64,000 nt of DNA from Macrostomum lignano. Lineage: Eukaryota. Below, piece after piece: positions 5,481-55,494 of the stretch; the stretch's first letter is position 1; every line of letters starts with the position of its first letter. Position numbers and translations under genes: made by a program. Below the pieces are notes generated by a model. The model saw only the letters and a program-made list of their open reading frames with translations. It made no database searches and was not told the DNA's origin. Location: assembly GCA_002269645.1 (NCBI GenBank), contig NIVC01000659.1, positions 186,001-250,000 of the forward strand, given 5' to 3'.

Positions 5481-5585
5481 CATCTGCTCAGCAACACCTC
5501 CGAGATGCTCAGTACCGCCTCACCATTCTCCTTTGCAGCTAATCGGTTTTCCGCAATTGTCGTCGTCAAGCCTCTAAAAATAGCA

Positions 5586-26510: not shown

Positions 26511-28695
26511 GCTACAACAATCTTACTATCTTTTAAAATAAACAACTAGTCAGTTTGCCAACATTTGATTTTGTTTCATTGGAAACTATGGATTTTATGT
26601 CTTATAACTGTTTTTTTGTGGTGATTGTCACTGTTTAAGGTGATTTCAGTGAAATTGTGTTTACTTTTTATAATTGTTGTTTATAATTATATCACAAAAA
26701 ACTAAAAATCTCTAAAGAAGTTTATAAAACACAATAGACATAGTATATGTAGCAACTTATCAGCAAGTAAATAGAAATAAAAATATAAAATATAAAATTT
26801 TATATAGAAATAATAGTAGAAATGGCATAAAAATAGAAGTTATAACATTGTATAAAAAGGCTGTGGTGGAAAGTGCAATTCATTATTTTCAATCAATTAG
26901 TCCATCTCAATCTGCGCCGACTCTATTATGCCCACACATTGATTTTCTCCAAATACACCCATATCGATTTAATGTACGCAAATGCATTGTACGCAAGCCA
27001 GGTGAACTTACTCTTTTTTACACGGCCTTGATTAACTATTTAATAAATAAACTGTAGCCCAGTGAGGCTGGGATTGTGTTTTTTTTGTGCATAATGCAGC
27101 GTCGCTAAAAGTTCAATCCAAATTGACTACAATTCAACTACATGGCGCCCAAACAGTGAAATTCTACTATCTATGATTCAGCAAACTGCGCTTTGAGGTT
27201 CAGGCTTTGGATCGGAGCTACAGGAATCGTCTGAATCTGCTCAACAATTCCTACGTCTTCAAGGCTCCTGTTGGCATCCGTTTCCGGGTCCTGAGGTTCA
27301 TCAACAAGAGCATCTTCGTGAAACTCCTTCGACTGCGCGGACTTGTTGAGACATTTTCTGTTTTTTTGCTAATTCATTTGACATCTATTCAAATTTCCCG
27401 TTTGTGTTTTTAAGCGAAGATGATTTTTTGTTAGATTATTCCCACTGTCATAATTTTTTGCTCTTCTCGTGCCTCATATCTGCTCGGAATCTGCTTCCTT
27501 CTTTCTTTCATCTGTCCTCTCGCCTGTCTCTGCTCTGTTCTTCTCAGCCTTTGATGGAGGAGTTCAAGAAAGATCGCGCTGTGCTGCGTCGTTCGGCTAC
27601 GTTGCTGGTGGAAAAGATTCAGGCGGTTTTGGCTGGAGCAGAGAAATCAGAGGATGAGGTAAATTGTTTGCTGCGCTTGGTGGTGACGAAGAAAACCGAG
27701 CTGGAAAAAGTCGACAAGCAGATTTTGCGCGAATTTGTTACAGACGATGGTGAGCCAACGGACAAGCTGCAGGAAGAGACGGAAAAATGTGACGAGTATA
27801 TGCTCAAATTAGAAAGAGCGGCTGCAGGTCTAGAGCGGATTCGGGAGAAAAGATTTAAATCGGTGGCTGCCCCATCTTCAATTGGTTCAGGAAGCCCAGC
27901 GTCAGCTGTCGGTTCCAAAGTGATGCCGGAGACGGCTGATCGCAAGTGCAATGTAAAGCTGCCGAAGATGAGTCTGCCTATTTTTGACGGGAGCGATCCA
28001 ACTCAGTGGCCCAACTTTAGTTCGCAGTTCAACTCATCAATCCACCAAAATTTGCATCTGTCAGATGTCGAAAAATTTTCATATCTTCAGAGCTGTCTAA
28101 AGGGTGAAGCACGACGATGCATCGAGAACTTTAAACTTACGACGGGTGACTACCACAACGCCTGGGAGTTGCTGGAAGACAGGTACGGGTCTCCAGATAA
28201 CCTCATTCAACACTTTATGAAGAGGCTCGAGACAGTCCGATGCGCGTCCGATTCCACTGTAGCTCTACGCTCATTCTTAGACGTGAGATCCAGCGTCCGA
28301 GCCCTAGAAACTTTAGGAGTGGCTACAAACAACTACGAAGTGCTACTTCTGCCGAATCTGGAAGCTAAGCTGCCCGGATCAATTCGCGCTGACGTCATGC
28401 GCCCAATTCTGACTAGAACTTATAGAAAACCGTCAAATCTGGAAAACTTCTTAGATGCACTCGACGACGAAATTAAACTCCGTGATCGATGTGCCCTGGG
28501 CTCAGGCAGATCAGGCGACCAAAGCCGACACACGCCAGAGATACGTAGTTCTGTAGCAGGACCTACTCAGAAGTTTTCATGCGACCAAGATTCGCATCCC
28601 TCTTCGTTCGTCACGCATCATCCGGCGTCAAAGGAGCAGAACAAAGCAGCAGAGAGTCAGCAATCGGATTCAGCGCAAAATTCCGTGTCGTGCAC

Positions 28696-29178
28696 AGTGC
28701 ACATACATGCGCAACCTTGGGAATCACCCGGCCGTTTCTATTGGCAACACACACATGTAAGTCGCCATACATGCGCAACAGTCGGCCGAGTCGGCCGATC
28801 CGGCCGACCGATTTGGCGGCCAACCAAGGAAGTCGCAAAAATGCCTACCCGAAAAAATAACAAAGTAGTAGTACTAAGTAGCTGACGAGGCATTTTGGCG
28901 TTATAAGACAGTCATAATTACTCCTGCCGTTTACCCAAAGTTGCGTTAATTTTGTTTTTGGTTTTTTTGCATGTAAATCGCATTTTTGGCCAAAAACTAT
29001 GTCGCATTTTTGTTAAAACTAAGTCGCATGGCCGACCGAATTTCGGAGGTTGCGCATGTATGTAAGTCGCTATTGGCTGAGAGCAGTCACGTGACCAATA
29101 TTCTGTCCAATAGCGACTTACATGTGTGTGTTGCCAGTAGAGGCGGCCGGGTGAATCCCTAGTTTGCGCCCAAGCATG
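28696..29178. mobile_element. Palindromic MITE of about 190 bp hosting the inner MITE, inserted in gag
   Basis: GGGAATCACCCGGCCG...CACACACATGTAAGTCGC mirrored at the right end; duplication CGTGCAC; another right-end copy at about 32694-32744. Confidence 0.75.
28766..29062. mobile_element. hAT-type MITE (297 bp), same family as 26041-26327
   Basis: TIR CATACATGCGCAAC; 8-bp TSD TAAGTCGC. Confidence 0.9.
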
Positions 29179-32100
29179 CGTGCACTTACTGTCGTCAGGG
29201 TCACTATTCCGATTTCTGCACGGTTGTTCCCACAGCAAAGGAGAGGATAGAGATTCTGAGAAAGGAGAGACGCTGCTTTTGCTGCCTACGACCGAACCAT
29301 CCTTCCAGTCAGTGTCGATCGAAGAGAGCTTGTCGCCATTGCGGTAAAATGCATCACCCAAGCGTCTGCCTGACTTCCCATCCTGGCGAAGCGCATCCTG
29401 CGATGACGAAAGTTGGAGCTGGGCACGTAGACCAGCAGAAAATAGTAACTCCACCGAACTGCAGTAGCACAACAGCCGTGACCATACCATGCGAGGACAA
29501 GACAATCTCTGAGAGTCAATCCCTTGTCGTGCACTCCAATCCTGCAGTGATCATGCCGACTGCTAAGTGTCTCATCATCAGTTCGGATGGCAAAACCGAA
29601 GTTCTGGTTCGTGCGCTCTTTGACACCGCCAGCAATAAAACTTATATCAGACAAGATTTAAGTCGGCAGCTGGACCTTGCAGTTGAGGCAACGGAAGTTT
29701 TGCGGGTCAACACATTTGGATCCAGCAGCACTGAATTCACATCAAGCATCGTCAGATTTAGCATTCGCAAAGCCAACTCTCTGGACGAAGATTATGTGAC
29801 TCTGAGAGGCTACACGACTCCTCGGATCTGCGAACCTCAGGCATCGGCGATGTGCGACGCTCATCCAGAACTCCAGCGTCTTCATCTGGCGAATCCATTT
29901 GACCCTCGCGATGCTAATGAGCCGATATCTATCTTGATTGGTGCCGATTGTTACTATGATTTGGTGGACGGCGACATCGTTAGAACAGTGAGCGGCAATG
30001 GTCCAGTCGCCGTTAAGAGCAAACTTGGCTATCTGGTCACCGGCAGATTAAGAATTGCTGACACACTTTGTGCTTCCTCGTCCGCATGCGCGATGCACTG
30101 TTCCGGAGAATCCCTAATGGATGGTATGCTGGCAGATTCCACAAGCAGTGAACTAGATCCGATGAGGGCGAAGCGGCCATTTCCTCCAAGTCTGGAATTT
30201 GAGCAAGGTAGATACTCCATCGGTCTGCCATTCAGGGATGGATGTCGAAAACTTCTGAGTGACAATTTTGGTCTCGCCTACCGACGGCTAAGGTCGACTG
30301 CGGAAAAGCTGCGTCAGACAGGAACAATCGACGAGTATGACAGGATCCTGCAGGAACAGCTGAACAGTGGCGTCATAGAACCTGTGCCATCTGACAGTGA
30401 TCCCGAATCAATCCAGCACTATCTGCCGCATTTGCCGATTGTCAAAGAGGACAGTTCGACGACGCGACTTCGTATCGTCTTTGATGCGAGCGCCAAGTCG
30501 GCAGCCGGCTGTTCGTTGAACGACGTATTGGAACAGGGTCCTTGCCGCTTGCCGTCTCTGTCACCGGAAGGTGGCTCACGGGGGAGTTGCAGCTACGTTG
30601 GTGCAGATTCGCGAGAAGTATTGGATGCTGAAGGCTCGGCAGAAAGTTAAATCTACTCTACGACGTTGCAACACCTGCATCCGGCTCCAGGGTTTGCCGT
30701 ACAAAGTTGGTCAGCAGTCGCAGTTACCCCTGTCAAGAATCGAATCGCTGAGAGCTTTCCAGCATGTTGGCCTGGACTACTGCGGTCCGCTTTTCTACCG
30801 CAGGGGGGAGGGAGATGGCCAACAAAAAGCCTACATCCTGCTCTTTGCCTGCATGGGCACCCGAGCGGTCCATCTTGAATGACCACAGATTTGACTACTC
30901 AATCTTTTCTGCAGAGTCTTCGTCGCTTCTGTGCTCGTCGCGGGATTCCGTCAATCATTTCGGACAACTTCAAGACTTTCCACGCAGCCGCGCGACTACT
31001 AGACGCCCACACGGCGCCCCTTCAGACCACACGAGTTCAAGAGTTTTTAGCCGCAAAAAAATCTGCTGGTCGTTTATCCCAGAAAAAGCACCATGGATGG
31101 GCGGATTCTACGAGCGATTGGTTGGTGTCGTGAAGTCAGCTTTGAAAAAGAACGTCTGCAAAGACTTTCTCACTCTGGACGAGTTAACAAACAGTTGTGT
31201 GCGAAGTGGAGGCAGTTGTGAATTCAAGACCACTCGGGTTCGTCTCGTCCGAAGCGCACGCGGAAGTGATCACGCCGAGTCATTTTCTTGTTCTGCATCG
31301 CCTGACAAAAGAACCAGAAGCGAATCCGAAAAGCCAAACAGTCCTGCCTCTTCCAGAGCGTCTGAGCAAAGTGCGGCGGATGCTGACCAAATTCTGGCAA
31401 GAATGGTTGAATGAGTACATCGTGGCTCTGCGCGAGCGTTCAGCAAGGAAGGAAGGACGAACTCTGGTCGCATAATCAAGGTCGGAGATGTCGTTTTGGT
31501 GATGGACGCCGGCATGCCGAGGCTGCAATGGAAGCTGGCGGTTGTGGAAGCGGTACATCATGGCCGTGATGGCGTTGCTAGGTCGTGCCTCCTGAGGTTA
31601 GCTAGTCCGCATCGTAGTCGCGCTGCTGTGCATTTTCGGCGGCCGGTGGCGTCGCTGGTTCCTCTGGAGGTCTAAGCCTGTCTCTCTTTTTTTGATCTTG
31701 TCTCGTGCTGTCTCGCCGTCGATCTCTCAGTCTATCTTTGTCTGCGTTTGCGTCGTCTAAATTCTGCGAGCTATCTGTAGCCACTGCGTGATTAGTTACT
31801 GATTCTGTTTCACTTGCATGATTTTTGCTGGCAATCAAATAATGCCTCTTGGTGTCGTAAGTACATACGTAAATTCGACGCACTTTTTTTAATCCGCAAT
31901 TGATCATAGTTTTGTTTGATTTTAATGTTCCAGTTTTTGATTGTCTTTGTGTCAAGGCACTTATTTCCAATATAAAATATTTTCTCGAAGTGCATTCGCT
32001 TATTTAGCTCGAAAATTTGTATTCGATAAAATAACTCGCATTCAATGTCTCGTCTTTATTTTCAGTGAAAGTTAGACTTTGCAGCCCTTTCCTTTTTAGC

Positions 32101-32940: not shown

Positions 32941-35900
32941 ATGTTAAGTCAACTTCGTCACAGTTGCTTCAAGTTCAAAGCAAGTTTTCAAGGTCTGACC
33001 CGACCACCCCTTCGCTGGGCACGCTCATCCTCATCAGCATTGCTGCAGCTTCCTGGCCATCAGGCGCCAAGTCTGCAGTTGCAGCGTCAGCTACACGATA
33101 AGCTGGTGCACAATCGGTCTCTTCGCTATCGTTTGGTGATATTTGACAAGGATGGCACCTTAGTGTGCTTTCACTCCATGTGGGCGCCTTGGGCTCGGGG
33201 CTTGGCAAATCGGCTGGTGAAGGCTAGCGGCCTTGATGTGGCTGCCAAGGTGGGTTTCTGGGTGAGGGTGAGGTAGAATGCCAGTTACAGGTGAGGTAGA
33301 ATGCCAGTTACAGGTGAGGGAGAGTGCCAGTTTCAGGTGAGGTAGAGTGCCAGTTGCAGGTGAGGGAGAGTGCCAGTTGCAGGTGAGGGAGAGTGCCAGT
33401 TACAGGTGAGGGAGAGTGCTAGTTACAAGTGAGGTAGAGTGCCAGTTATAGGTGAGGAGAGTGCCAGTTACAGGTGAGGTAGAGTGCTAGTTACAAGTGA
33501 GGTAGAGTGCCAGTTACAGGTGAGGGAGAGTGCCAGTTACAGGTGAGGGAGAGTGCCAGTTGCAGGTGAGGGAGAGTGCCAGTTGCAGGTGAGGTAGAGT
33601 GCCAGTTACAGGTGAGGGAGAGTGCCAGTTGCAGGTGAGGTAGAGTGCCAGTTACAGGTGAGGGAGAGTGCCAGTTGCAGGTGAGGGAGAGTGCCAGTTG
33701 CAGGTGAGGGAGAGTGCCAGTTACAGGTGAGGGAGAGTGCCAGTTGCAGGTGAGGGAGAGTGCCAGTTACAGGTGAGGGAGAGTGCCAGTTGCAGGTGAG
33801 GGAGAGTGCTAGTTGCAGGTGAGGGAGAGTGCCAGTTGCAGGTGAGGGAGAGTGCCAGTTGCAGGTGAGGGAGAGTGCCAGTTACAGGTGAGGGAGAGTG
33901 TCAGTTGCAGGTGAGGTAGAGTGCCAGTTGCAGGTGAGGTAGAGTGCCAGTTGCAGGTGAGGGAGAGTGCCAGTTGCAGGTGAGGGAGAGTGCCAGTTGC
34001 AGGTGAGGTAGAGTGCCAGTTGCAGGTACCGGACACCCAATTCCTCGCACTGATCCGGCAGGTTTACGGGATCCTGGGAGTCTGCGAGCAGACCCAGCGT
34101 GCGGGTCCGGGCCTGCTGGCCGAGGGCACCAAAGCCCAGATGCGGGTAGCACTGGCGCAGATGCTGGCTCACGAAGGCATGGACAAGGCCAAGGCCACCG
34201 CTATTGTTGAGGCCTGCGTGCCGGAGCCCGCTACGGATGCTGAGCACGTCAAGGAGCTGCACGATCTCAGCCAGCTGTTCGAGGTGCTGAGGCAGCACGG
34301 AGTGAAGATCGCCGTGTGCACCAGCGACCAGCGGGAGAGCACCATTGAGTCGCTTCGCCGGCTGGGGGTGAGGCGGCTGATGGGTGTCTCAGGATGGAGC
34401 GGGTGATGGTGTCTCAGGGTGGAGCGGGTGATGGTGTCTCAGGATGGGGCGGGTGATGGTGTCTCAGGATGGAGCGGGTGATGGTGTCTCAGGATGGGGC
34501 GGGTGATGGTGTCTCAGGGTAGGGCAGGTGATGGTGTCTCAGGGTAGGGCAGGTGATGGTGTCTCAGGGTAGGGCAGGTGATGGTGTCTCAGGGTAGGGC
34601 AGGTGATGGTGTCTCAGGGTGGGGCAGGTGATGGTGTCTCAGGGTAGGGCAGGTGATGGTGTCTCAGGGTGGGGCGGGTGATGGTCAGTGGTGTGATTCA
34701 GGCGCGAATTCGCGCCAGGCGCGAAAATGGCGCGAATGCGCGAATCCTGGGGGTCTGGCGCGAAATTTTGTGGAACCATGGGCGCGAAAATTGCATTCTT
34801 ATTTTCTGCTTTTTACGCTTATTCTCTTGTCAGACAGTATGAAATACAAGAATGTCATAGCTTAGGAGATTAATCTCGAGAATTTCGAGATTCGTGGAGA
34901 ATTTCGTGGTCGCAAAGAAGCAAAGTGACAATGAAGATGTGGCTGCTACGTCTGCAAGGGCGGCAGAGATCAGATGTGTGTGTTGTCAGGATTGCACTGA
35001 AGAATCGCAGCTTCGAGTCAGAAGAGGACCTTGCCGAGGATCTGATGGCCATTTGCCCAGATTCAAAGATTCCACCCAACATCGCCAACAAGAAGTTCAG
35101 GCGGGACACGGCTGGGACTTGAGAGACATGCTAATTGGTAGCCAGACGCATCCTCAAAAGTGTCATCAATTGACTTATTTGGCTGTCAGTAGAATATCAT
35201 TGGCATGGCGCGAAAATTTTCAGTCGGCGCGAAATTGGGCAAACTTTCCAATCACACCACTGGTGATGGTGTCTCAGGGTGGGGCGGGTGATCGTGTCTC
35301 AGGGTGGGGCGGGTGACTTAAAAATGTGGTCTCAGCCCGACTCAAACAGGAATCTCAGCATGACTCAAACAGATATTTCAGCATGACTCAATCAAGAACC
35401 TCAGCATGACTCAAACAGATATTTCAGCATGACTCAAACAGATATTTCAGCATGACTCAATCAAGAACCTCAGCATGACTCAAACAGATATTTCAGCATG
35501 ACTCAAACAGGAACCTCAGCGTGACTCAAACAGATATTTCAGCATGACTCAAACAGATATTTCAGCATGACTCAAACAGATATTTCAGCATGACTCAATC
35601 AAGAACCTCAGCATGACTCAAACAGATATTTCAGCATGACTCAATCAAGAACCTCAGCATGACTCAAACAGATATTTCAGCATGACTCAAACAGGAACCT
35701 CAGCGTGACTCAAACAGATATTTCAGCATGACTCAATCAAGAACCTCAGCATGACTCAAACAGATATTTCAGCATGACTCAAACAGGAATCTCAGCATGA
35801 CTCAAACAGATAGTTCAGCATGACTCAATCAAGAACCTCAGCATGACTCAAACAGATATTTCAGCATGACTCAATCAAGAACCTCAGCATGACTCAAACA

Positions 35901-38900
35901 GATATTTCAGCATGACTCAATCAAGAACCTCAGCATGACTCAAACAGATATTTCAGCATGACTCAAACAGATATTTCAGCATGACTCAATCAAGAACCTC
36001 AGCATGACTCAAACAGATATTTCAGCATGACTCAAACAGGAACCTCAGCGTGACTCAAACAGATATTTCAGCATGACTCAAACAGATATTTCAGCATGAC
36101 TCAAACAGATATTTCAGCATGACTCAATCAAGAACCTCAGCATGACTCAAACAGATATTTCAGCATGACTCAATCAAGAACCTCAGCATGACTCAAACAG
36201 ATATTTCAGCATGACTCAAACAGGAACCTCAGCGTGACTCAAACAGATATTTCAGCGTGACTCAAACAGGTGTCTCAGCATTACTCAAACATGTATCTCA
36301 GCATGACCCTGATGCGCCTCCTCCCAGGTGTCCCACCTAGTTGACAAAGTGGTGTGCGCAGACGATCCAACCAGCCTGCCGAAGCCGGACCCGCACAACG
36401 CCCTGATGATCTGTGACGCTTTGAGCGTGCATCCAAAGGACACCGTGATGGTCGGGGACACGGCCACCGACATGCAGTTCGCTAAGCAGGCTGGTCTCGG
36501 CCTGGGGGTCGGCGTTCTGAGCGGCATTGGGAGGTGCGTTTTGTTGAATTCGGTAGTCCGTAAATTGGTCAGATCAATTTATAAAATTATTGATTGAGTA
36601 GTTGAGTATTAGATCATAGGATTGTCATTTGATGGTTAAATTAATTGGTCAGATCAATTTTTTATTGGTCAAACCAGTTTGTAAATTCGTTTGATTGATT
36701 CGTAAATTGGTGAAATAATTTTAGAAGTATATAAGATAATTTTTTAAATTGGTCAGGTTAATTTGCTAATTTGTCAGAGTAATTAAAAATGGTCTAAACC
36801 AGGGGTCGGCAACCTTTTTCCACTTGAGGGCCAGATGAGGTTTTCAGTTCAAGACCACGGGCCACAGGTCGTCCCCCGATTACTTCGCCCCCCCCCCCTG
36901 GGTCTTTCTTTACCCTCCAAAATCTGCCCTCTGGGTCTTTACCTCCAAAATCTGCCCTCTGGGTCTTTACCTCCAAAATCTGCCCCATGGGTCCTTACCC
37001 TCCAGAATCCGCCCCATGGGTCTTTACCCTCCAGAATCCGCCCCGTCGGTCTTTACATTCCAGAATCCGCCCTCTGGGTCTTTACCCTCCAAAATCTGCC
37101 CCGCTGGGCCTTTACCCCCCCCCATACCATATTCGAAAGTTTGAACTGATGTGCTGTCTGTCTAGAGTTTGTAAACAGCCACTTACACGATCAGTTTGGG
37201 TCTCATTGTTAACTAATTTGTTATTAAAGTTGGCAATTGAGGAAAGAAATTTCCCATTATTAGTGCACAAAACTTTTGTAGGAGAAACAATGAAGTTACA
37301 ATAAAGGTGCGGGCCGGATTGTAATAATTAAGATTAAGGAAGTTCGCGGGCCGCATAGAAAGTCTTTGCGGGCCGGATCTGGCCCGCGGGCCGGAGGTTG
37401 CCGACCCCTAGTCTAAACAGTTCATAAGTTTGGTAGCGTAATTTGATAGCAACACATAAGTTGATCAAATAAATTTACAAATTGTTCAAATCAATGTGCT
37501 GGTTTTTTAAACCAATTTACAGATTAGTCAAGCCAATTTGCAGATTAGTCAAACCAATTTGCAGTTTAGTCAAACCAATTTGCAGATTAGTCAAACCAAT
37601 TTGCAGTTTATTCAAACCAATTTGCAGATTAGTCAAACCAATTTTTGCAGATTTGTCAATCCAATTTGCAGATTAGTCAATCCAATTTGCAGATTAGTCA
37701 ATCCAATTTGCAGATTAGTCAATCCAATTTGCAGATTAGTCAATCCAATTTGCAGATTAGTCAATCCAATTTGCAGATTAGTCAATCCAATTTGCAGATT
37801 AGTCAATCCAATTTGCAGATTAGTCAATCCAATTTGCAGATTAGTCAAACCAATTTGCAGATTAGTCAAACCAATTTGCAGATTAGTCAAACCAATTTGC
37901 AGATTAGTCAATCCAATTTGTAGATTAGTCAAACCAATTTGCAGTTTAGTCAAACCAATTTGCAGTTTATTCAAACCAATTTGCAGTTTATTCAAACCAA
38001 TTTGCAGTTTAGTCAAACCAATTTGCAGTTTATTCAAACCAATTTGCAGATTAGTCAAACCAATTTGCAGTTTATTCAAACCAATTTGCAGATTAGTCAA
38101 TCCAATTTTCAGATTGGTCAAATCGATTTGCACATTGTTTATAATAAATTTAAAATGAACTATTTATTTTCGCTCTGTATTCTAGGAAAGCCGACTTGGA
38201 AGCTGCAGGCGCCAGCACAGTAGTAAACACTGTGGGCGATGTGCTGCCAAATTTCTTCCCAGACCAGCCGATCAGCTTGACGGAGTCTGCGCGCCTCATC
38301 GCCGAGCGCGACTGGCGGCTGATCATCTGCGACAAGGACGGCAGTCTGGCCGACGTGCGCACCCGCTGGTCGGAATGGGCGCTGCGGGTTGGCAACCGCC
38401 TGGCCGAAGCTACCTCCGAATCGGTGGCCGAAAATTTCTACGATCTCATCGGATTCGACCCGGACACTGGCCGGATTCTGGGCGGTCCGTTGGCCGAGAG
38501 TCCGCTGTCCGATTTGCGCGATATGCTTGAGAGTCTGCTGCTGTTGAAGTGGCGGGTGGACGACAAGCAGCTGAGGGGAATTCTGGACCAGGTGAAATTC
38601 CATTGTCTACCTGGTTACCTTGAATTATAATGAGAAAGTCAATCATTTCTGCTCCATGGTAAAATTTGCGATTCTCTTCAGTCAAGTTCGGGATTTCCCT
38701 TAACCACTGTAATCTCGGATTTCTCTCACGTGAGTGCGGGATTCCCTTCGTTCCAATTGGGATTCCCCCCAATCCAACTCGGGATTCCCCTCCATCTGAT
38801 CGCGATTCCCCTCAATCCAACTCGGGATTCCCTTCATCCCAACTCGGGATTCCCTTCATTCCAACTCGGGATTCCCCTCAATCCAACTCGGGATTCCCCT

Positions 38901-41900
38901 CAATCCAACTCGGGATTCCCCTCAATCCAACTCGGGATTCCCTTCAACCCAACTCGGGATTCCCTTCAATCCAATTCGGTATCGGGATTCCCCTTCATCC
39001 GATGGCGATTCCCCTCAATCTAACTCAGGATTCCCTTCAATCCAACTCGGAATTCCCTCAATTCAACTCGGGATTCCCCTCAATCCAATCGGAAATTTCC
39101 CTTCAATATAACTCGGGATTTCCCGAAATCCAACTTAGGATTCCCTTCAATCCAACTCGAGATTCCCATCAATCTAACTTGGGATTTCCCGAAATCCAAC
39201 TCGGGATTTCCCTCAATCTAACTCAGCTGATTTTTCTCAATCCAACTCGGGATTCCCCTCAATCTAACTCAGCTGATTCCCCTCAATCCAACTCGGGATT
39301 CCCTTCCGTCCAACTCGTGATTCCCCAACTCAGGATTCCCCTCAATCAAGCTGGCTACTCCGCCCCCCTCTGCAACCAATCCAAGGTGTGGGACGACGGC
39401 AGCTCGGCCAGCAACCGCGCCGCCGACTCGCTGGCCGCCGATGGTATCCCGGAGGCTTTGGCCGACCTTCGCTCGCTCGGCTGCCGCGTCGCCGTGGTGA
39501 CGTCGGACTCCCGAGCCAGCCTGAACCAGTTCCTCACCGACTTCAGCCTGGCCAGCCTGGTGGATTACAGCCTGACCCCGGCCGAGCACCAGCCCTGGAG
39601 CGGCGCCTGCAAGTCACAGCCGCTGCTGGCCGCCTGTCGCCTCGCCGGCGTCTCCCCAGCCGACGCCGTCGTTGTTGGCGACACTCGCGCCGATTTGTCC
39701 GGCGGCCGGCGCGCCCGTCTCGGCGCCACCGTCGGCGTCCTGAGCGGCATGTCGGGACCGGAGGCGCTGATGCCGCACGCCGATTTGCTGGTGCCGAACC
39801 TGCCAGGCTTGACCGGCCTGCTCAAGCGGCGGCCTGCAGCTGAGCTCGGCCGGAGGTCCTACTCCACCTCCGCGGCGTCTGCCGAATACGATTACGTCAT
39901 CGTTGGGGCGGGCAGCGCCGGCTGCGTGTTGGCTAACCGATTGACCGAAGATTCCAATGTTCGCGTGCTGCTGGTGAGTAGCCTGTCTGGGTTATTGTTA
40001 GATCCTGGATGGGTTTGAACCTCAGCTGAACTTCAGGATCCTGAATGGGTTTGAACCTCAGCTGAACTTCAGGATCCTGAATGGGTTTGAACCTCAGCTG
40101 AACTTCAGGATCCTGGATGGGTTTGAACCTCAGCTGAACTTCAGAATCCTGGATGGGTTTAAACCTCAGCTGAACTTCAGAATCCTGGATGGGTTTGAAC
40201 CTCAGCTGAACTTCAGGATCCTGGATGGGTTTGAAACTCTGGTGAACTTCAGGATCCTGAATGAATTTGAGCTTCAGGTTTTAGGATTCTGAATGAGTTT
40301 GAGCTTCAGGTAGACTTCAGGATTCTGAATGGATTTGAGCTTTAGGTAAACTTCAGGATCCTGAATGAATTTGAGCTTCAGGTAAACTTCAGGATCCTGA
40401 ATGAATTTGAGCTTCAGGTAAACTTCAGAATCCTGAATGAATTTGAGCTTCAGATAAACTTCAGAATCCTGAATAAATTTGAGCTTCAGGTAAACTTCAG
40501 GATTCTGAATGAATTTGAGCTTCAGGTGAACTTCAGGATTCTGAATGAGTTTGAGCTTCAGGTGAACTTCAGGATCCTGATGAATTCGAGCTTCAGGTAA
40601 ACTTCAGAATCCTGATTGAGATTCAGCTTAATCTAAACTTCATGATTCTGAATGAGTTCGAGCTTGAGCTAAATTTTTGTATCTTTAATACCCAGAGTAA
40701 AAATGAATATTCTTCCAGATCGAAGCCGGCCCCACCGACCGTCGCAACCTGTTCATCCACATGCCCGCCGCTCTCATGTACAACCTGTGCCACGACAAGT
40801 ACAACTGGTACTATCACACTCTGCCGCAGAAGCACATGGACTCCAGGGTGATGTACTGGCCGAGAGGTCGCGTCCTTGGTGGCAGCAGTTCGCTAAACGC
40901 TATGGTTTACGTTCGGGGTCATGCATTTGACTATGACAGGTAAATATAGGGGCAATTCATGTGTCTCACTCCTGGTATAATTTTTAACGCTCTTGCGATA
41001 TCGAGAGCTGATTCAGAATATCCCATTTATCAATTATGAATCTTGTGTATATATGAGGTGGGTTGCGCGGGACTGTAGAGACAAGACGTCACGAGTCTGG
41101 GATGCACGGGTCATAAGCTTTCTGTTAAGGGTCATAGGCTGTATCAGGGGGTCCGTTATGAAGGGGTCATATGCCTTTTGTTAAGGGGTCATAAGCATTT
41201 TGTTAAGGGGTCATAGGCCTTTTTCAGGGTCATAGACCTTGTTTTAAGGGGTCATAGGCCCGGAAGCACAAGTCATAAGCCCTGTACCAAGAGATCATGG
41301 GCCTCGGAGCAAGGGGTCATAATCTTCGTGTCAAGAAGTCAATCTTTGTGTCAAGGAGTCTTAATCTTCGTGTCAAGAAGTCAATCTTTGTGTCAAGGAG
41401 TCTTAATCTTCGTGTCAAGGAGTCAATCTTGGTGTCAAGGGGTCATAGCCTGGTGTTAAGGGGTCATAGCCTGGTGTCAAGGGGTCATAGCCTGGTGTTA
41501 AGGGGTCATAGCCTGGTGTCAAGGGGTCATAGCCTGGTGTTAAGGGGTCATAGCCTGGTGTCAAGGGGTCATAGCCTGGTGTTAAGGGGTCATAGCCTGG
41601 TGTTAAGGGGTCATAGCCTGGTGTCAAGGGGTCATAGCCTGGTGTTAAGGGGTCATAGCCTGGTGTTAAGGGGTCATAGCCTGGTGTTAAGGGGTCATGT
41701 TTGTAGCAGAGGGGTCACAGAGTCAGCAATCTCGGCAGCTGATTGTCACCCCTCGGCCACCCCCAGGTGGGCCAAAGAAGGCGCCGCAGGCTGGTCCTAC
41801 GCGGACTGTCTGCCCTACTTTCGCAAAGGTCAGCATCACGACGACCTGCCGGCTGACGATTACGTCGGCGGCGACGGGCCGCTGCACGTGTCGCGAGGTC

Positions 41901-44900
41901 GCACGGCGCATCCGCTGCACAGCGCCTGGCTGGCAGCCGGTCAGGAGGCCGGATATCCGCTTAGCGACAACTTGTACGGCTATCAGCAGGAGGGAGTTGG
42001 CTGGCTAGACATGACCGTGCACAATGGCAGGCGGTGGTCAACCGCTACAGCTTATCTTTGGCCGGCTGCCAAGAGGCCAAACTTGACTGTGGTTACCGAC
42101 AAGCTGGTGACGAGGTAAATTGTTGGATGAGTTGACTGCAAAAGTTTTGTTTGTTTGGGGTTGTTTTTGGGATGACTGCTCAAGTTGGAGATGTTTTTGG
42201 GATGACTGCTCAAGTTGGAGATGTTTTTGGGATGACTGCTCAAGTTGGAGATGTTTTTGGGATGACTCTCAAGTTTGAGATGTTTTTGGGATGACTGCTC
42301 AAGTTTGAGATGTTTTTGGGATGACTGCTCAAGTTTGAGATGTTTTTGGGATTACTGCTCAAGTTTGAGATGTTTTTGGGATGACTGCTCAAGTTGGGTA
42401 TGTTTTTGGGATGACTGCTCAAGTTTGAGATGTTTTTGGGATGACTGCTCAAGTTTAGGATGTTTTTGGGATGACTTCTCAAGTTGGGGATGTTTTCGGG
42501 ATGACTGCTCAAGTTGGGGATGTTTTTGGGATGGCTGCTCTAGTTTGGGATGACTGCTCAAGTTGGGGATGTTTTTGGGATGGCTGCTCTAGTTTGGGAT
42601 GACTGCTCAAGTTGGGGATGTTTTTGGGATGACTTCTCAAGTTGGGGATGTTTTCGGGATGACTGCTCAAGTTAAGGATGTTTTTGGATGACTGCTCAAG
42701 TTGGGGATGTTTTTGGGATAACTGCTCAAGTTTGGGATGTTTTTGGGATGACTGCTCAAGTTGGGGGTGTTTTTGGGATGACTGCTCAAGTTGGGGATTT
42801 TTTGGGATGACTGCTCAAGTTGGGGATATTTTTGGGATAACTGCTCAAGTTGGGGATGTTTTTGGGATGACTGCTCAGGATAACTGCTTGAAGTTCAAGG
42901 ATCAGAGTGATTTAAATCCTTGCTTGTGCTTGGGATTAGAGTGGTTGGGATTCAGATCACTGGCAGCCTGAGCAGTGCAAGCCCCACCCTCTCCCCTCCC
43001 CAGCCTGGTGTTCGACGGTCTCCGTGCTACCGGCCTGCAGATGCAGGGCAGGCGTGGCGGCGGCGGCGACAGCCAGACGGTCCGCGCCAATCGCGAGGTC
43101 ATTCTCAGCGGCGGCGCCATCAACTCGCCCCAGCTGCTCATGCTGTCCGGCATTGGGGACGCTGACCAGCTGCGCAATCTGGGCATCCCGCTGGTGCACC
43201 ACCTGCCCGGAGTTGGTGCCAACCTCCAGGTGAGAGCCCATAGCACACACTACCCCCGTAGCACCCACCACCCCATAGCACCCACCACCCCATAGCACCC
43301 AGCACCCAATAGCACCCAACACCCCACAGCACCCACCAACCCGTACCACCCACCATCCCACAGCACCCACCACCCCACAGCACCTACCACCCCACAGCAC
43401 CCACCACCCCACAGCACCTAACACCCCACAGCACCCACCACCCCACAGCACCCAGCACCCCATAGCACCCAGCACTCCACAGAACCTACCACCCCACAGC
43501 ACCCACCACCCCACAGCACCCACCACCCCATAGCACCCACCACCCAATAGCACCTACCACCCCACAGCACCTACCACCCCACAGCACCCACCACCCCACA
43601 GCACCCACCACCCCACAGAACCTACCACCCCACAGAACCTACCACCCCACAGCACCCACCACCCCACAGCACCTACCACCCCATAGCACCCACCATCCTA
43701 CAGCACCCAACACCCCACAGCACCCACCAAACCCGTACCACCCACCACCCCACAGCACCCACCAACCCGTACTACCCACCACCCTATAGCACCCACCACC
43801 CCATAGCACCCACCACCCCACAGCACCCACCAACCCGTACCACCCACCACCCTATAGCACCCACCACCCCATTGCACCCACCACCCCACAGCACCCACCA
43901 CCACAAACGTATCTCACTGTCTACCTCACCGCTCCCACCGCCGTCAGGACCACCTGGAGCTCTACGTGCAGCAGCGGTGTACTCAGCCAATCACACTGTA
44001 CAGCGCCCAGTGGAAATTCCCCTGGAACATGGTGGGCATCGGACTGCGCTGGCTGACCACCCAGACAGGCTGGGGCGCCACGTCTCACCTAGAGACTGGC
44101 GGCTTCATCCGCACGGAGGCTGGCGTGCCTCATCCGGACGTGCAGTTTCACTTCCTGCCGTCTGTGGTCACGGATCACGGTCGAAAGTCGGGCAATTGTC
44201 ACGCGTTTCAGGTAGGCATTGTTCATTAGGTGCTGGAATTATTGATTTTTTCTAATATTTCGCATTGTTTTTCACTCCACTTAATCCGCTTCACAAATAT
44301 TATAATCCTACAATCTCCCAATGATCCAGTCCTAATCCGCTTCCCAATGATCTTCCCATAATTTACTTTTAATAATCCACTGACGATGATCCACCTCCGA
44401 TAATCTACTCAATTATTACTTCTGATGATCTACTTCCAACAATCTACTTCCGATAATAAATTTCTGATAATCCGCCTCCGATAATCCACTTTCCACAACT
44501 CACCTCCGATAATCCACTTCCCATAACCGAGCTCTGATAATCCACTTCCAACAACCCACCTCTGATAATCCACTTCCCACAACCCACCTCTGATAATCCA
44601 CTTCCGATAGTCTACCTCCGGTAATCCATTTTCAAGAAATATTTCATCTTCGATAATTCATCTCTAATAATATCCTCCCGATAATCTACTCCCGATGATC
44701 CAATTCCAAAAATCTACTTTCGATAATCCATTACAGATAATACACTTCTACATTCCACTTCCGATAATTCATCTCTGATATTCTGATAATCTATTTCAAC
44801 TGGATAAATCATTTCGACAATTAAATTCCGATAATCCACTCCCTATTATTAACCTCCAATTAATATTACTAGATGAAACTATAGTCAGAGTTTATCCCAG

Positions 44901-45989
44901 ACCGTTTATAATCATATCCAAACGAATCCCCCAGGTGCACGTGGGCCCCATGCGGCCGGAGAGCCGCGGCACGCTTCGGCTTGCCTCGGCGGACCCGCGC
45001 CAGGTGCCCCTGCTGGATCCAAACTACATGGCCACCGAGCGGGACAGGTGGGAAATGCGGCAGTGCATCCGGCTGGCTAGGGAGATTTTCGCCCAGCCCG
45101 CGTTCGACCAGTACAGAGGTGAGATAATAGTAGATCCCCATAGCAACTGTCATTCCTATACTAACCGCATCTATTGCCAAATAAAAAACCATTACAATAG
45201 CAACGATTTGGCTCCATAGCAGCGGTTAGGCCCCCCATAGCAACGGTTAGGCTCCCTCCATAGCAACGATTTGCCTCCCCATAGCAACAATTCGCCCCCA
45301 TAGCAACGATTTGCCCCCATAGCAACGATTAGCCTCCATAGCAGCGATTAGCCCTCATAGCAACGGTTAGGCCCCCATAGCAACGGTTAGGCCCCCATAG
45401 CAATGGTTAGGCCCCCATAGCAACGGTTAGGCCCCATAGCAACAATTTGCCCCCATATCAACGGTTAATATGGCCCCCATATCAAGGGGGCCTAATAGCA
45501 ACGTTTAGTCCGCCATAGCAAGGGTTAGAACTAATAGCAATCATTAGCCCTCTTAGCAACGATTAGCCTCCCTAGCAACGATTGATCCCCATGGTAACAA
45601 CCATTCGATCTCCAGGCTCCGAGCTGCAGCCGGGCTCCGAGGCCCGCACCGACGCCCAGCTGGACGCATTCGTCCGGGCCGCCTCCGACTCGGCCTACCA
45701 CCCGTCCTGCACCTGCCGCATGGGCCCGGCCGCCGACCCCACGTCCGTGCTGGACGAGAACCTCCGGGTTCGTGGACTCGACGGCTTGCGCGTCGTCGAC
45801 GCCTCGGCGATGCCCTCGATTGTGTCCGGCAATTTGAACGGGCCAACCATCATGCTGGCCGAGAAGGCCGCCGACATCATCAGGGGCCGCCAGCCGCTGC
45901 CACCAGCCACCGAGGTCCCCGTGTGGCAGCCGGCCCGGCCGGAAAGGCAGCGAGACGGGGAGCCGGTCAGGCGATTGGAGCAGGTTTAA
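32941..45989 (+). CDS. CHDH: Mitochondrial fusion protein: presequence, two HAD-like phosphatase domains and choline dehydrogenase (GMC oxidoreductase); exons 32941-33249, 34062-34367, 36328-36533, 38186-38591, 39386-39973, 40719-40939, 41767-42114, 43004-43229, 43948-44211, 44935-45118, 45616-45989 (1143 aa)
   Basis: HAD1 FDKDGTL/CTS/PKP/GDTATD; HAD2 CDKDGSL/VTS/CKS/GDTRAD; [71 protein letters not shown]; the HAD2 end and CHDH start lie in one exon (39386-39973); all phases consistent. Confidence 0.92.
33265..34027. repeat. 23-bp minisatellite (GTGCCAGTTGCAGGTGAGGGAGA)n in intron 1
   Basis: About 33 units, each containing CAG|GTGAG. Confidence 0.94.
34380..35315. repeat. 25-bp G-rich minisatellite (GTGATGGTGTCTCAGGGTAGGGCAG)n split by a MITE
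   Basis: Units resume after the insertion at 35263. Confidence 0.88.
34686..35262. mobile_element. hAT-type MITE (577 bp), TIR CAGTGGTGTGATT, subterminal GGCGCGAAA repeats
   Basis: 13-bp perfect TIR; 8-bp TSD GTGATGGT. Confidence 0.88.
35335..36305. repeat. 23-bp minisatellite (TCAGCATGACTCAAACAGATATT / TCAGCATGACTCAATCAAGAACC)n containing TGACTCA
   Basis: About 40 units, two interspersed variants. Confidence 0.95.
36800..37410. mobile_element. hAT (Charlie-like) MITE (611 bp) containing an internal minisatellite of about 28 bp
   Basis: TIR CAGGGGTCGGCAACCT / AGGTTGCCGACCCCTA; 8-bp TSD GTCTAAAC. Confidence 0.9.
37510..38110. repeat. 21-bp minisatellite (CAATTTGCAGATTAGTCAAAC)n
   Basis: Tandem units in intron 3. 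Confidence 0.94.
38735..39345. repeat. 22-bp minisatellite (CCCCTCAATCCAACTCGGGATT)n
   Basis: Tandem units in intron 4. Confidence 0.9.
39995..40660. repeat. 36-bp minisatellite with two variant blocks (GGATCCTGAATGGGTTTGAACCTCAGCTGAACTTCA to GGATCCTGAATGAATTTGAGCTTCAGGTAAACTTCA)
   Basis: Tandem units in intron 5. Confidence 0.92.
41110..41700. repeat. 21-bp minisatellite (GGGGTCATAGCCTGGTGTCAA)n with degenerate 5' part
   Basis: Tandem units in intron 6. Confidence 0.9.
42155..42880. repeat. 30-bp minisatellite (TGTTTTTGGGATGACTGCTCAAGTTGGAGA)n
   Basis: Tandem units in intron 7. Confidence 0.93.
43240..43900. repeat. About 17-bp C-rich minisatellite (CACCCACCACCCCACAG)n
   Basis: Tandem units in intron 8. 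Confidence 0.92.
44330..44850. repeat. Degenerate CCGATAATCCACTT repeat in intron 9
   Basis: Eroded tandem units. Confidence 0.7.
45215..45575. repeat. About 20-bp minisatellite (CCCCCATAGCAACGGTTAGG)n in intron 10
   Basis: Tandem units. Confidence 0.88.
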
Positions 45990-48633: not shown

Positions 48634-51501
48634 ATGAGCATGAGACCGCCGAAGCCGCAGGGTCCGCTGCAGGTGGACAAGGCTACTCACCACTCGCTGG
48701 AGCTGAACTGGGAGGCGCAGCTGCAGCAGGCGGCCGCAGAGCAGAGCGGCGAGGACGGCCGACTTCGAGTAGAGGTCCAGTGGTGCCGATTTGAGAACAC
48801 CTGGGAGGTGGCCTACAAAGGATTCGATGTGCGCTGCGTCTGCGCAGGCCTGGAGCCCAACCAGGAGTACCAGGTGGGCAGTTGAGCTTTGCGAAATTCG
48901 AAATCTTGATGGCTGTTTAATTTAACTCTGAGGGACATTGCTAATACAGCTGACGCCAATTCCGTTAGAAACGAATTACCGTGACAAGAATTGCTATAGA
49001 GAGTCATTGCAAACAACTCACTCTAGCGACTATGGGGCGACTCTTGTGACTTTTTAGCGACTGGTGCGATGGAGAAGCGGTTTTTGAGTCTGGAGCGCAT
49101 CACGTGAGCTGCAGAATCGTAAAAGAGTCGTGAAAAGATCGTCCAAGAGTCGTTGTGTTAGCGCTTTACTTTCTACTGACTCAAGTAGTCTAAACAGAGT
49201 TGTTATAAATGCGAAATGCGATTCTGATTCGTTAAGTAAGTGACGCAAATGCGCTTTAGACGCAAGTCGGTGATTCTGCAGCGACTCGAGCTGCCTCAGA
49301 TCCGACTTTACGGCCCCAGAGTCATTTCAGAGTCGAAGCCTACATGTAGGTACCGTTTTCAGCGGAATAGTACGATACATTCTTGCAGAAGCCTTGAAAA
49401 TCGTGTCTCGTTACGTCTAAACTCAATGTGAGCGATGGTTTTCTAGCGAGGAGGAACACTGATACGTACACAGGCATGGCACAGGCTCACAGGATGTCCC
49501 TTCCCTCAAATGAATGAATTGAACCAAGGGTCGTGTCGTGCGACTACGTGATTACAGTTGAGCTACTCCAGCCCGACAGCAAGAATTCGTTTGTTTTGTA
49601 TATTTGTGGATTGAGTGCCCGCAGCCCCTGGATGTAAGAGCAACTGCAGCACCCCCCCCTCGTCAAAACCCAGGTGCGAATCCGGTTCGGCAACGGGCAC
49701 GGCTGGGGCGACTTCAGCGAGCCGGTGACATCGAAGACCGCCGCCAAGCCGTTCAGCGGCGAGGATCTGCACCGGTATATTCGTCGACGAAATTTGGACG
49801 CTCTGGTGAATGTGCTGGAGACCGGGGAGGCCAACCCCAATGCGCCGGATGACAAAGGTTTTACGCCTCTGGCTGAAGCGGCTCTGGAAGGCTTGCTGGA
49901 CTATTGTCAGGCGCTGCTGGACCATCGGGCTGATGTCAACTGGTCTGGAGACAATGGTGCGTCGAAGGGTTGAAGCTGGATTAGTTTACATATTACCGTT
50001 GTGGTGTACATGCTGAATGAATTTTACTTCCTGATAGAGTGTACCCTCAGGGAGAAATAATTATTTTTTCATCACAAAGACAATGATTGCATTTGATCTG
50101 TGGTAGTAAAGATTACCATTATTGTACAATAATTTAGCATGCACAGCACGTTACTCTGTTGATTTTATGTAGTTCTGTAGTAAAATGATTTTTTCTTATC
50201 AGAATTCTCATCTTAAATTGGCCTCCAAAAATTACACAATGTTTGAGTTTTTTTGTCGTGTTTTTCGACAGTACAGTGGTGATTTTTTTAAATTAATGTG
50301 TTAGTACATGGATTCTAGAGTGTGTGGCAGAAGGAGGACTTAAGTGGGACGGGAAACCTCGTTTCCTAGAAAATTTTTGAAGGCGGCTTTTCCCGAAAAA
50401 ATACACTACGGAGATAGGAAGTTTTCATTTTTTCAGCAAAAAATTGCTATTGCTTTTGATAGGAGGCAGATCCAGTGTTCATCTTTTGATATGTTGTGCC
50501 TTTTTTATTGCTCTATCGATATTTATAAAGCTTTTCGTTCAGAAAATTAGGATTCTATGTTAATTTTTTTTCTACGTACATTTCCTTTACCTAAACAATA
50601 ATAAAAATGCATGGCACAGCTTCAATCTTTGGTTTTATGAATCTATCTTATCATCTCTGTTACAAATATTTGTTACTCAGTCAGCTAAGGATGATAAAAT
50701 AGACTCATAAAACCAAAGAGCCGAGCCGTGCCATTTTAATGGTTTTTAGGCACAAGACAAGTGCAAATGTACGTAGAATAAAAATAACGTATTTTTAAAG
50801 TGATAAAGTATTTTTCGGAAAAGCCGGCCCTCAAAACTTTTCCAGGAAACGAGGTTTCCCGTCCTTCTACTTAAGTCGTCCTTGGTGTTGCATTGCTGAC
50901 AAAATAAACATTGCTGATCAAAGTCGTTTGTCCAATGTTTAATTTTCAAAGAACTTCCCGATCCTGCACCGCCGCAGGCAAGACCTGCCTGATGCTGGTG
51001 GCCTACAAAGGCAAGCCGGAGGTGCTTCAATGGCTGCTGGAGTCGGCCAACGCCAGTTTGCATCCGCGCGATCGCAACGGGCTCAGCGCGCTGCACTACG
51101 CGGTGGACGGCGAACAGCTGGACAATGTCCGACTCCTGCTGGACGCCGGAGCCGACCTGCACGCCAAGGACAACGCCGGCTGCACGCCGCTGCTCCGCTG
51201 CGCCCAGCACCGCAATAACGGCAACGCAGCATTGGCAGTCGAGCTGCTCAACCGTGGAGCGCTAGTCGACGAGACCGACTCCAGCGGGCAGACGGCGCTG
51301 TTTTACTGCGTGATGAACCGGCACGAGAAGCTGGCCGCTGTGCTGCTGCATCACGGAGCCGACATCCGGGCCACCAACAGCCGCGGCCTGTCCGTGCTGA
51401 AGGCCACAGACGGCCAGCAACCGGACCGCAAAGCGATGCGGGCGCTGCTGCTTGAGCACGAGGAGAAACGCCGGTCGGAGCAGCAGCAGAAATCCGCTTA
51501 A
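48634..51501 (+). CDS. FANK1: Fibronectin type III and ankyrin repeat domains protein 1; exons 48634-48873, 49674-49956, 50978-51501 (348 aa)
   Basis: FN3 (HHSLELNW...GLEPNQEYQVRIRFGN) followed by ankyrin repeats (GFTPL, GKTCLM, GLSALH, GCTPL, GQTAL); phases consistent. Confidence 0.9.
50330..50884. mobile_element. hAT-type MITE in FANK1 intron 2
   Basis: TIRs ...ACTTAAGT...GACGGGAAACCTCGTTTCC; TSD GTGTGGCA/GTGTTGCA (7 of 8 match); same family as 57090-57799. Confidence 0.85.
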
Positions 51502-54204: not shown

Positions 54205-55494
54205 ATGAGCCCTACTCATCTCTTTGGATCGTCAAGAAAACTACGGATGAGATTCTAGCGAACTTAAGGCTCTTCGTGGCTCCAACCGCATCTGCGGTGA
54301 GCATAGTGGGCCTTCTTCTATCCGTATGGGCGTTCGCTAGAACCTGGCGCGTCCTCAAAGGCAAGGACCTGCTGCTGTGCGCCAATATCGCGGCCGACTT
54401 CGTCACCGTTGTCACCACGTAATTTTCAATCGTTTGATTATCAAATGGCCAAGCCGCACACGTTACCAGGCACAAAAATAATTTGGCAAGTTAGCAAAAA
54501 GTGAAGTATAAGAGATAGTCTACTATGAGTAGTAATAGCAGGAGGGCTGCGGGCACCCTTCGGCGACATCGTCCTAGAAGCAGCGCCGAAGTAATTCTGC
54601 TCATTACGCTGCTCGGCACGCACTCATACACACGCTCACACAGGGTCGTCAGTCATGTACACTCTCACCTAGCAGTCCTTGCCAATGTCCCTTCCTGGTG
54701 TCCGCAGGCTGACTGCCCGCGAGTTTCTCAACGGCGGCCTCGGTAGTCGAATGTCGCTAGCGCTGCCCCACCTGGCTCTGAACTGGGCCTGCAAGCTGTG
54801 GGCCTTCTTCTGGGTGCTCAGCAATAGCCTGTCGTCCAATTTGATTTGTCTGATGGCCGCGGACCAGATCTACGCCCTGTGCTGGCCGCTGCGCCACCGA
54901 ACTCGCATGACAAAGCGGAAATACTGCCTGACGCTCTTCTTGTTCGTCTTTCTCTTTGCCTGCGCAGCAGCTCAGGGCGTCCTGTACGAGACTTACGACT
55001 ACTATGGGCAGAGGTACTGCTACCTGCCACTCATGCTGATCAAAGTCGTCTCCGAGCTCACCCAGGCCTACGCCTCGCTGCTACTTAACGGCGTTGTTAG
55101 CAGCATAGCTCTGGCCGTTAGCAACGTCTTCATCTGCGCCAAGATCTTGTCGATTCGAGCAGCCAGTGCGAAGCTGCAGCAGCAGGCGGACCAGCAGGCG
55201 GTGGACCTGCGCGGCGCCAGAAGCCTGCTGGTCACTGCCGCCGTCTACCTACTGGTCTCGCTGCCCCGAGTGGCGACGTACTTTTTAGCCTATCTCAACA
55301 TCCGCTACAACATGTGGGATAACGGGGACATCATGAACCCACTGCTGCTGGCGCTGGCTAACGTTTTCAACTACCTGTTCTACGTGTACTGCTCGGTTAA
55401 CTGGCTGCTCTGCGGTCTGCGAATTCGGCTGTTTCGCCACCAGTTCAACCAGCTCCTGGGCCGCCTCAGGCAGCGCGCCACTGGGCCTGCGTAG
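54205..55494 (+). CDS. Orphan rhodopsin-like (class A) 7TM GPCR; exons 54205-54418, 54708-55494; N-terminal exon not located
   Basis: Seven hydrophobic segments; TM3 end LMAADQIYALCWPLRHR; TM6 VYLLVSLP; TM7 followed by FRHQF helix 8; phase-2 intron consistent. Confidence 0.8.

Follow-up and report, generated by a model that had tools for sequence, protein, structure and literature searches.

We analysed a window of 64,000 nucleotides from Macrostomum lignano (contig NIVC01000659.1, positions 186,001 to 250,000 of the forward strand) and focused on the locus at 32941-45989 of its plus strand. Read from its sequence, the locus is one protein-coding gene for a predicted precursor of 1143 residues, consisting of a presequence-like N-terminus, two HAD domains (HAD1 and HAD2), a linker and a choline dehydrogenase (CHDH). 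Sequence comparison identifies it as a local member of a HAD-CHDH fusion family that is already predicted in several animal phyla and in one protist transcriptome, and the architecture as such is not new. The most testable new point is the conserved cleavage-type motif in the linker between the phosphatase-like part and CHDH.

Translation of the plus strand displayed a chain of HAD-like and GMC-like open segments from 32.8 to 46.2 kb, and nothing coding-like was seen on the opposite strand of the locus. The segments form 11 exons separated by 10 introns, all of them GT-AG and consistent in phase, and the resulting frame of 1143 codons ends with TAA; an in-frame stop precedes the ATG by 21 codons. 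Exon 1 (32941..33249, residues 1-103) contains the start codon, the Arg/Ser/Leu-rich N-terminus and motif I of HAD1, FDKDGTL (33142-33162). Exon 2 (34062..34367, residues 104-205) encodes the HAD1 cap domain and motif II, AVCTSD (34311-34328), and exon 3 (36328..36533, residues 206-274) motifs III and IV of the same domain. The C-terminus of HAD1, a short spacer, motif I of HAD2, CDKDGSL (38328-38348), and the first part of the HAD2 cap follow in exon 4 (38186..38591, residues 274-409). Exon 5 (39386..39973, residues 410-605) encodes motifs II to IV of HAD2, the linker (39818..39886, residues 554-576) with the string RRSYSTS (39851-39871, residues 565-571), and the first GMC beta-alpha-beta unit with VGAGSAGC (39902-39925). 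The GMC_oxred_N domain continues through exons 6 (40719..40939, residues 606-679), 7 (41767..42114, residues 679-795) and 8 (43004..43229, residues 795-870), the substrate-binding part of the GMC fold lies in exon 9 (43948..44211, residues 871-958), and GMC_oxred_C is shared by exon 10 (44935..45118, residues 959-1020) and exon 11 (45616..45989, residues 1020-1143 and the TAA), the last of which includes AYHPSCTC (45693-45716) and SGNLNGPT (45825-45848).

The order along the protein is therefore an Arg/Ser/Leu-rich N-terminus, HAD1, HAD2, a linker of 25-30 residues and a complete CHDH. Both domain junctions are internal to exons, the one between HAD1 and HAD2 in exon 4 and the one between HAD2 and CHDH in exon 5, where a single open frame runs through without a stop. 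An earlier reading of the same DNA, hereafter the original prediction, had described 11 phase-consistent exons for 1143 residues and had argued from the junction inside 39386-39973 that the fusion was no artefact of joining neighbouring genes. Our assembly of GT-AG exons arrived at the same count, and the uninterrupted frame of exon 5 supports that argument.

Two splice sites required a closer decision. An alternative acceptor of exon 2 at 34026 would give a protein of 1155 residues, with 12 additional residues at the exon 1/2 junction. As this insert is missing from all seven aligned homologues, we preferred the acceptor at 34062 and the 1143-residue product. The acceptor of exon 5 is an unusual AAG; the Q|V-W junction created there matches the conserved Q-x-W of the homologues, in which the W is invariant in the seven-homologue alignment. 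We also considered extending exon 5 upstream into the open frame 38663-39385. This was rejected, the stretch being a 22-bp minisatellite with no match in homologues. The N-terminal 62 residues contain 10 Lys and Arg, a single Asp or Glu and 10 Ser and Thr, and by this composition count alone the N-terminus fits a mitochondrial presequence.

The C-terminal part was the easiest to classify. Pfam recognised GMC_oxred_N with 188.4 bits (2e-55; cut-off 23) and GMC_oxred_C with 138.8 bits (2e-40; cut-off 24.6). The last 569 residues scored 800.8 bits against the NCBIfam choline dehydrogenase model NF002550 (cut-off 605) and covered profile positions 5-557 of 563; as the profile was matched nearly end to end, no exon is missing and CHDH is complete. 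The score for the bacterial betA equivalog, TIGR01810, was 719 bits, slightly short of its cut-off of 732.1. The FAD motif VGAGSAGC (residues 582-589), YHPS at 1047 and GNLNGP at 1091 occupy columns that are invariant among 40 aligned sequences, and so are the C-terminal His and Asn. Identity of this part to any match did not exceed 67 %. Judged by its sequence, the CHDH part has all the hallmarks of the FAD enzyme that produces betaine aldehyde by oxidising choline, and the complete GMC-family dehydrogenase with its GxGxxG site and YHP histidine, which had been proposed before, was recovered here.

Both HAD domains of the original prediction were likewise recovered. Two Pfam profiles each matched two stretches of the N-terminal half (PF00702, 139 bits; PF13419, 116 bits), and all four catalytic motifs are present in HAD1 (FDKDGT, AVCTSD, KPDP, VGDTATD) as well as in HAD2 (CDKDGS, AVVTSD, CKSQP, VGDTRAD). 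For HAD1, an AlphaFold model based on 42 sequences reached a pLDDT of 95, and its closest solved structures found by Foldseek were HAD-IA phosphatases with a helical C1 cap, including the phosphatase domain of Acinetobacter MtlD. HAD2 also folds well in a model of residues 299-1143, in which the GMC domain is modelled confidently too. By motifs and fold, both domains are of the subfamily-IA (C1-cap) type with the full phosphomonoesterase motif set, and they are very probably phosphomonoesterases. HAD1 is the orthologue of the single HAD domain found in fused proteins of other phyla (189-220 bits against the invertebrate fusion HADs compared), and HAD2 is nearest to the HAD2 of trematodes (129-136 bits). 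The window HAD2 keeps D-K-D-G in motif I, whereas the HAD2 of molluscs and krill has D-L-H-G and has lost the general acid/base Asp.

Family searches with the HAD part returned generic enzymes. A sequence search of PDB gave 19 matches at E<=0.001, to generic HAD-IA enzymes, and the NCBIfam matches, among them the phosphonatase-like, phosphoglycolate phosphatase and PpaX models, were weak and below threshold. Ranked best by family and fold were phosphoglycolate phosphatase, beta-phosphoglucomutase-like proteins, N-acylneuraminate-9-phosphatase and PpaX. The phosphonatase-like model TIGR03351 was the top NCBIfam match, and we rejected this assignment: the two domains scored 71 and 47 bits where the cut-off is 218.9, and they have D-K-D-G in motif I and Lys in motif III, in which the phosphonatase-like family has D-x-A-G-T and Arg. 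We also rejected a relationship to the known phosphocholine phosphatases. The PHOSPHO1/PECP1 profile PF06888 gave no Pfam match at E<=0.01, and PchP was found neither among the 19 PDB sequence matches nor among the top 50 fold matches. The original prediction had invoked PHOSPHO1 and Pseudomonas PchP as precedents, and this hint at homology was not borne out.

We searched the HAD1-HAD2 part against 5.8 billion proteins and found no protein more than 40 % identical to it, from which we conclude that the database does not contain the protein of this organism itself. One HAD domain followed by both GMC domains was found in the amphioxus Branchiostoma belcheri (P0035, 880 residues), the crinoids Anneissia japonica (P0054, 870) and Antedon mediterranea (866), the hemichordates Glandiceps talaboti (P0071, 907) and Ptychodera flava (P0076, 896) and the copepod Lepeophtheirus salmonis (P0066, 863), and most of these animal proteins are labelled "choline dehydrogenase, mitochondrial-like". 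The same layout occurs in a EukProt transcriptome protein of a protist (Rmarinus, 886 residues). The HAD-HAD-GMC order was seen in models from Octopus (P0005, 815 residues) and Dreissena (P0009, 830 residues, partial). The search with the CHDH part placed more than 15 further fused proteins of 766-839 residues among the best matches, many of them truncated inside HAD2, and a HMMER pass over 1.84 billion cluster representatives had a fused protein as its top match. Stand-alone CHDH proteins of about 600 residues are present in vertebrates, sea urchins, starfish, sea cucumber, Lingula and an ascidian, and because of these groups the distribution of the fusion is patchy. The implied novelty of the architecture, for which a search of its taxonomic range had been suggested, thus did not survive: HAD+GMC proteins are already in the automated annotation of several phyla, and the three-domain form is in partial mollusc models. 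In the literature on the fusion or on invertebrate phosphocholine phosphatases we found no paper describing or testing the fusion.

Other records bear on the reality of the fused frame. Two short intronless contigs come from assemblies of sequencing runs: one of 2.4 kb (L001) has HAD1, HAD2, the linker and the start of GMC in one open reading frame, and one of 3.4 kb has an open reading frame of 812 residues for HAD2 and CHDH (P0235). We infer that both contigs are transcript assemblies, because the window gene has ten introns. In Opisthorchis felineus (SJOL01007411.1; L002, 10001-43269) a GMC gene for 671 residues shares its strand with a HAD-HAD gene located 4.5 kb upstream of it. A genuine TAA closes the HAD-HAD model after ...LVLSNQH, and the GMC model starts with 66 N-terminal residues of its own. 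As the two Opisthorchis genes are in tandem, the linkage of HAD and CHDH survives even where the parts are annotated separately. The intronless contigs and the Opisthorchis linkage speak against an artefact of the gene model.

A published primer pair touches the same family. The qPCR primers for "CDH" of Crassostrea hongkongensis (PMC11849188) translate to PSGHNTL and VMKKIG, and near matches, PSGHNTTL and VKSKIGV, are found 37 residues apart in the HAD2 part of P0235. The oyster "CDH" cDNA, to judge from these translated strings, probably includes a HAD module, which that paper does not mention. Some more distant HAD relatives have other fusion partners: P0080 (E 2e-30) has an MFS transporter domain, and P0082, the weaker match (E 8e-16), an SPX domain.

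The comparison of fused proteins brought out a recurring string shortly before the GMC domain, which we then counted in 38 fused proteins, with 2000 residue shuffles of the same linkers as the null. The motif R-x-[FY]-S-T was present in 32 of the 38 linkers; the shuffles contained it in 0.13 linkers on average and in 2 at most. Counted over residues, the motif occurred 43 times in the 3223 residues of the linkers and once in the 26110 residues elsewhere. The motif copy nearest to GMC begins 14-22 residues ahead of Rossmann strand 1 in 28 of the 35 linkers with a looser form of the motif. Linker length ranges from 35 to 145 residues among the fused proteins, and nothing outside the motif is conserved. 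Presequences of stand-alone animal CHDH have similar strings, (F/Y)-S-(T/A), at this distance too, and for this reason the motif is most simply taken as the retained end of a CHDH presequence. The corresponding string of the window protein is RRSYSTS, around which the linker is predicted to be disordered: residues 559-573 are the sole stretch with pLDDT<50 between HAD2 and GMC in the AlphaFold model of residues 299-1143. MPP sites are characterised by Arg at -2, and sites trimmed by Icp55 by Arg at -3 together with a Tyr or Phe preceding the final cut (bioRxiv 10.1101/639203). Cleavage by MPP is also documented at presequence-like junctions within composite precursors, for example yeast Arg5,6 and Atp25 (PMC8734313, PMC5063612); PMC8734313 makes no mention of CHDH or HAD proteins. 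RRSYSTS is therefore a candidate internal cleavage site of the MPP/Icp55 type. The original prediction overlooked this presequence-like linker, and the two activities may end on separate polypeptides and not in one channeling enzyme.

From these observations we propose an explanation in which, taken as a whole, we have slightly more confidence than doubt. The precursor would be imported into the mitochondrial matrix, where MPP would cut the R-x-(F/Y)-S-T site of the linker and Icp55-type trimming would follow. The phosphatase module and CHDH would be freed as separate polypeptides, made in a fixed ratio. The HAD module would hydrolyse a phosphate ester of the same pathway, the simplest candidate being phosphocholine, and the choline released with Pi would feed CHDH for glycine betaine. 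We put the middle step, that the linker site is a retained presequence end which MPP and Icp55-type trimming cut to release both modules, at even chances on the strength of the motif. That the HAD module acts on an ester in the pathway of CHDH, phosphocholine being the simplest candidate, is a tentative suggestion well short of even chances.

The conserved linker also bears on two other accounts of the gene. According to the first, which is the model of the original prediction, the protein is an uncleaved bifunctional enzyme, with all three domains on one polypeptide at the inner membrane and choline, freed from phosphocholine by the HAD domains, passed directly to the CHDH site. The frame is continuous within exon 5, the fusion recurs across phyla, and an uncleaved HAD-dehydrogenase has been solved in MtlD, whose phosphatase domain was one of the fold matches. 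However, the predicted disorder of the linker comes with a conserved cleavage motif of the presequence type, which a mere tether would not need, and the length of the linker varies from protein to protein within the range given above. We regard an uncleaved enzyme as unlikely.

The second account assumes two functional products with separate starts. Most CHDH would come from an internal promoter or from an AUG in exon 5 (Met531 or Met538), the linker would be its presequence, and the long open reading frame would be a minor or read-through product. Two in-frame Met codons do precede RRSYSTS by 28-35 residues, the linker resembles the presequence end of stand-alone CHDH, and the Opisthorchis annotation has separate genes. 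However, neither a stop codon nor an intron separates the parts in the window gene, the segment beyond Met531 includes three acidic residues, which is atypical of a presequence, and several fused homologues, e.g. Branchiostoma P0035, have no Met in the corresponding stretch. Moreover, both parts are in one open reading frame on the intronless contigs of other species. A separate start for CHDH seems very unlikely to us.

Regarding the substrate, coupling of phosphocholine hydrolysis to betaine synthesis is a plausible reading by analogy, which we infer from the repeated fusion and gene linkage with CHDH and from the plant route. In betaine-making plants a phosphatase frees choline from phosphocholine before oxidation. 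Alternatively, the HAD module could be a mitochondrial phosphatase for another ester, such as a sugar or acid phosphate, a damaged metabolite or a flavin nucleotide, with the fusion serving only co-import or co-expression with CHDH. The generic nature of the best family and fold matches suits this alternative, and so do the stand-alone orthologues of about 300 residues in nematodes and Nematostella, at least one of which (P0052, from a nematode) has a basic, presequence-like N-terminus. However, it is repeatedly CHDH to which the HAD module is fused or linked, in animals as well as in a protist transcriptome, which argues for a shared pathway, and fusions to the other partners (MFS, SPX) appear only among weak, more distant HAD matches. 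This alternative is a doubtful possibility in our view.

Several points weigh against the cleaved phosphocholine-to-betaine precursor. The gene model was read from genomic sequence. The Opisthorchis parts are annotated as separate genes, so the fusion is not obligatory. The 38 linkers come from related proteins and their motif counts are not independent events, and one fused protein, P0168, has a short linker without the motif. Sequence and fold comparisons (Pfam, NCBIfam, PDB, Foldseek) name no substrate for the HAD domains, which lie outside both known families of phosphocholine phosphatases. The D-L-H-G of molluscs and krill in place of D-x-D-G means that the second domain need not be catalytic everywhere. 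To our knowledge, phosphocholine is not an established metabolite of the mitochondrial matrix.

In marine invertebrates glycine betaine ranks among the major osmolytes and methyl donors, and it is not settled where the choline for its synthesis in mitochondria comes from. A phosphatase module that is repeatedly fused or adjacent to CHDH in distant animal groups and in one protist points to a missing step of the pathway. If the proposed cleavage is true, its motif would extend the short list of mitochondrial composite precursors that are cut internally by MPP by a metabolic example from animals. Such proteins are at present named only "choline dehydrogenase", their HAD part is ignored, and many of the models are truncated or split. 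In its broadest form, the idea is that the HAD-CHDH family is an unrecognised mitochondrial polyprotein of animals, with one presequence and a linker cut by MPP/Icp55, which would supply a matrix phosphocholine phosphatase and CHDH in a fixed ratio and give invertebrates a phosphocholine-to-betaine route lacking in vertebrates. We consider this broad form quite improbable.

Every one of the 10 introns has its own minisatellite, with a period of 17-46 bp and 7-39 copies, and in 8 of the 10 it fills most of the intron. The arrays are located at 33267-34027, 34366-34685, 35330-36307, 36907-37117, 37509-38136, 38737-39326, 40001-40665, 41161-41698, 42155-42877, 43237-43902, 44421-44635 and 45197-45592. 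Those of introns 1 and 2 start at or beside the donor. The repeat unit of intron 1 includes the splice-site-like strings GGTGAG and TTGCAG, and the last unit of the array supplies the alternative acceptor at 34026. Similar long low-complexity open frames with strong local GC and AT skew are found at 398-914, 1492-2534, 4616-5574, 11887-13935, 14457-15147, 15397-16107 and 17723-19147. Minisatellites seem to be widespread in this genome.

Upstream of the fusion gene, the plus strand contains a core exon of a class II aminoacyl-tRNA synthetase (974-1480), an eIF3L (Paf67) exon (6913-7845) and, directly before the gene, BEL/Pao-like retroelement frames with DUF1759 and an integrase zinc-binding domain (27350-31500); a glutathione peroxidase exon lies on the minus strand (23318-23782). 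Downstream, an ankyrin-repeat gene (50908-51498) and a rhodopsin-type GPCR (54673-55491) are on the plus strand. Exons of an MFS/Sugar_tr-type transporter (57990-62693, minus strand) are located 12 kb downstream of the CHDH gene, and our impression is that this transporter is SLC22-like, of the organic cation transporter type. The eIF3L exon has 59 % identity to its best match and about 51 % to mollusc, brachiopod, nemertean and annelid orthologues, and the latter value suggests that the lineage is fast-evolving or poorly sampled. Taken with the trematode-like HAD2 and the low CHDH identities, it would suit a spiralian on a long branch, perhaps a flatworm.

Finally, we compared the window protein with known systems. 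Vertebrate CHDH and bacterial BetA share with it the GMC fold, the FAD motif and the conserved His and Asn, and the vertebrate enzymes are 62-65 % identical to it. They differ in being stand-alone, as the original prediction had stated: the vertebrate proteins have about 590-635 residues and the BetA-like ones about 530-565, and both lack HAD domains. PHOSPHO1/PECP1 and Pseudomonas PchP also belong to the HAD superfamily and catalyse the reaction proposed for the window protein, but they represent other HAD families. MtlD of Acinetobacter baumannii, a mannitol-1-phosphate dehydrogenase/phosphatase, resembles it in the fusion of a HAD-IA phosphatase domain to a dehydrogenase, with a fold match of E ~1e-10 and a weak NCBIfam match. 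Its dehydrogenase is unrelated, its phosphatase acts after the dehydrogenase, and it is a bacterial protein with no targeting signal or cleavage. Mannitol, the product of MtlD, serves as a compatible solute. The composite precursors Arg5,6 and Atp25 begin with a presequence, and two enzymes of one pathway meet in them at an internal presequence-like junction that has an MPP-type motif; cleavage is demonstrated for them and only predicted for the window protein.

The HAD-HAD(-CHDH) proteins of molluscs and krill (Octopus P0005, Dreissena P0009, Meganyctiphanes P0006 and the contig protein P0007) have the same three-domain order and the linker motif. They differ in motif I of HAD2, as described above, and all their models are partial or internally gapped. 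The trematode HAD-HAD proteins (Opisthorchis felineus CRM22_007285, P0001; Schistosoma mekongi MN116_001184, P0002) are the best matches of HAD1-HAD2, with 37-40 % identity over 96 % of that part; their HAD2 keeps D-K-D/N-G, and in Opisthorchis the HAD1/HAD2 junction is in one exon. In contrast to the window gene, they have an annotated stop after HAD2, and CHDH is a separate gene model. The invertebrate HAD-CHDH proteins annotated as "choline dehydrogenase, mitochondrial-like" have one HAD domain instead of two. They share with the window protein an N-terminal extension, a HAD-IA domain orthologous to HAD1, a linker with R-x-(F/Y/L)-S-T and a full CHDH, which in P0035, P0071 and P0076 is 63-64 % identical to that of the window protein.

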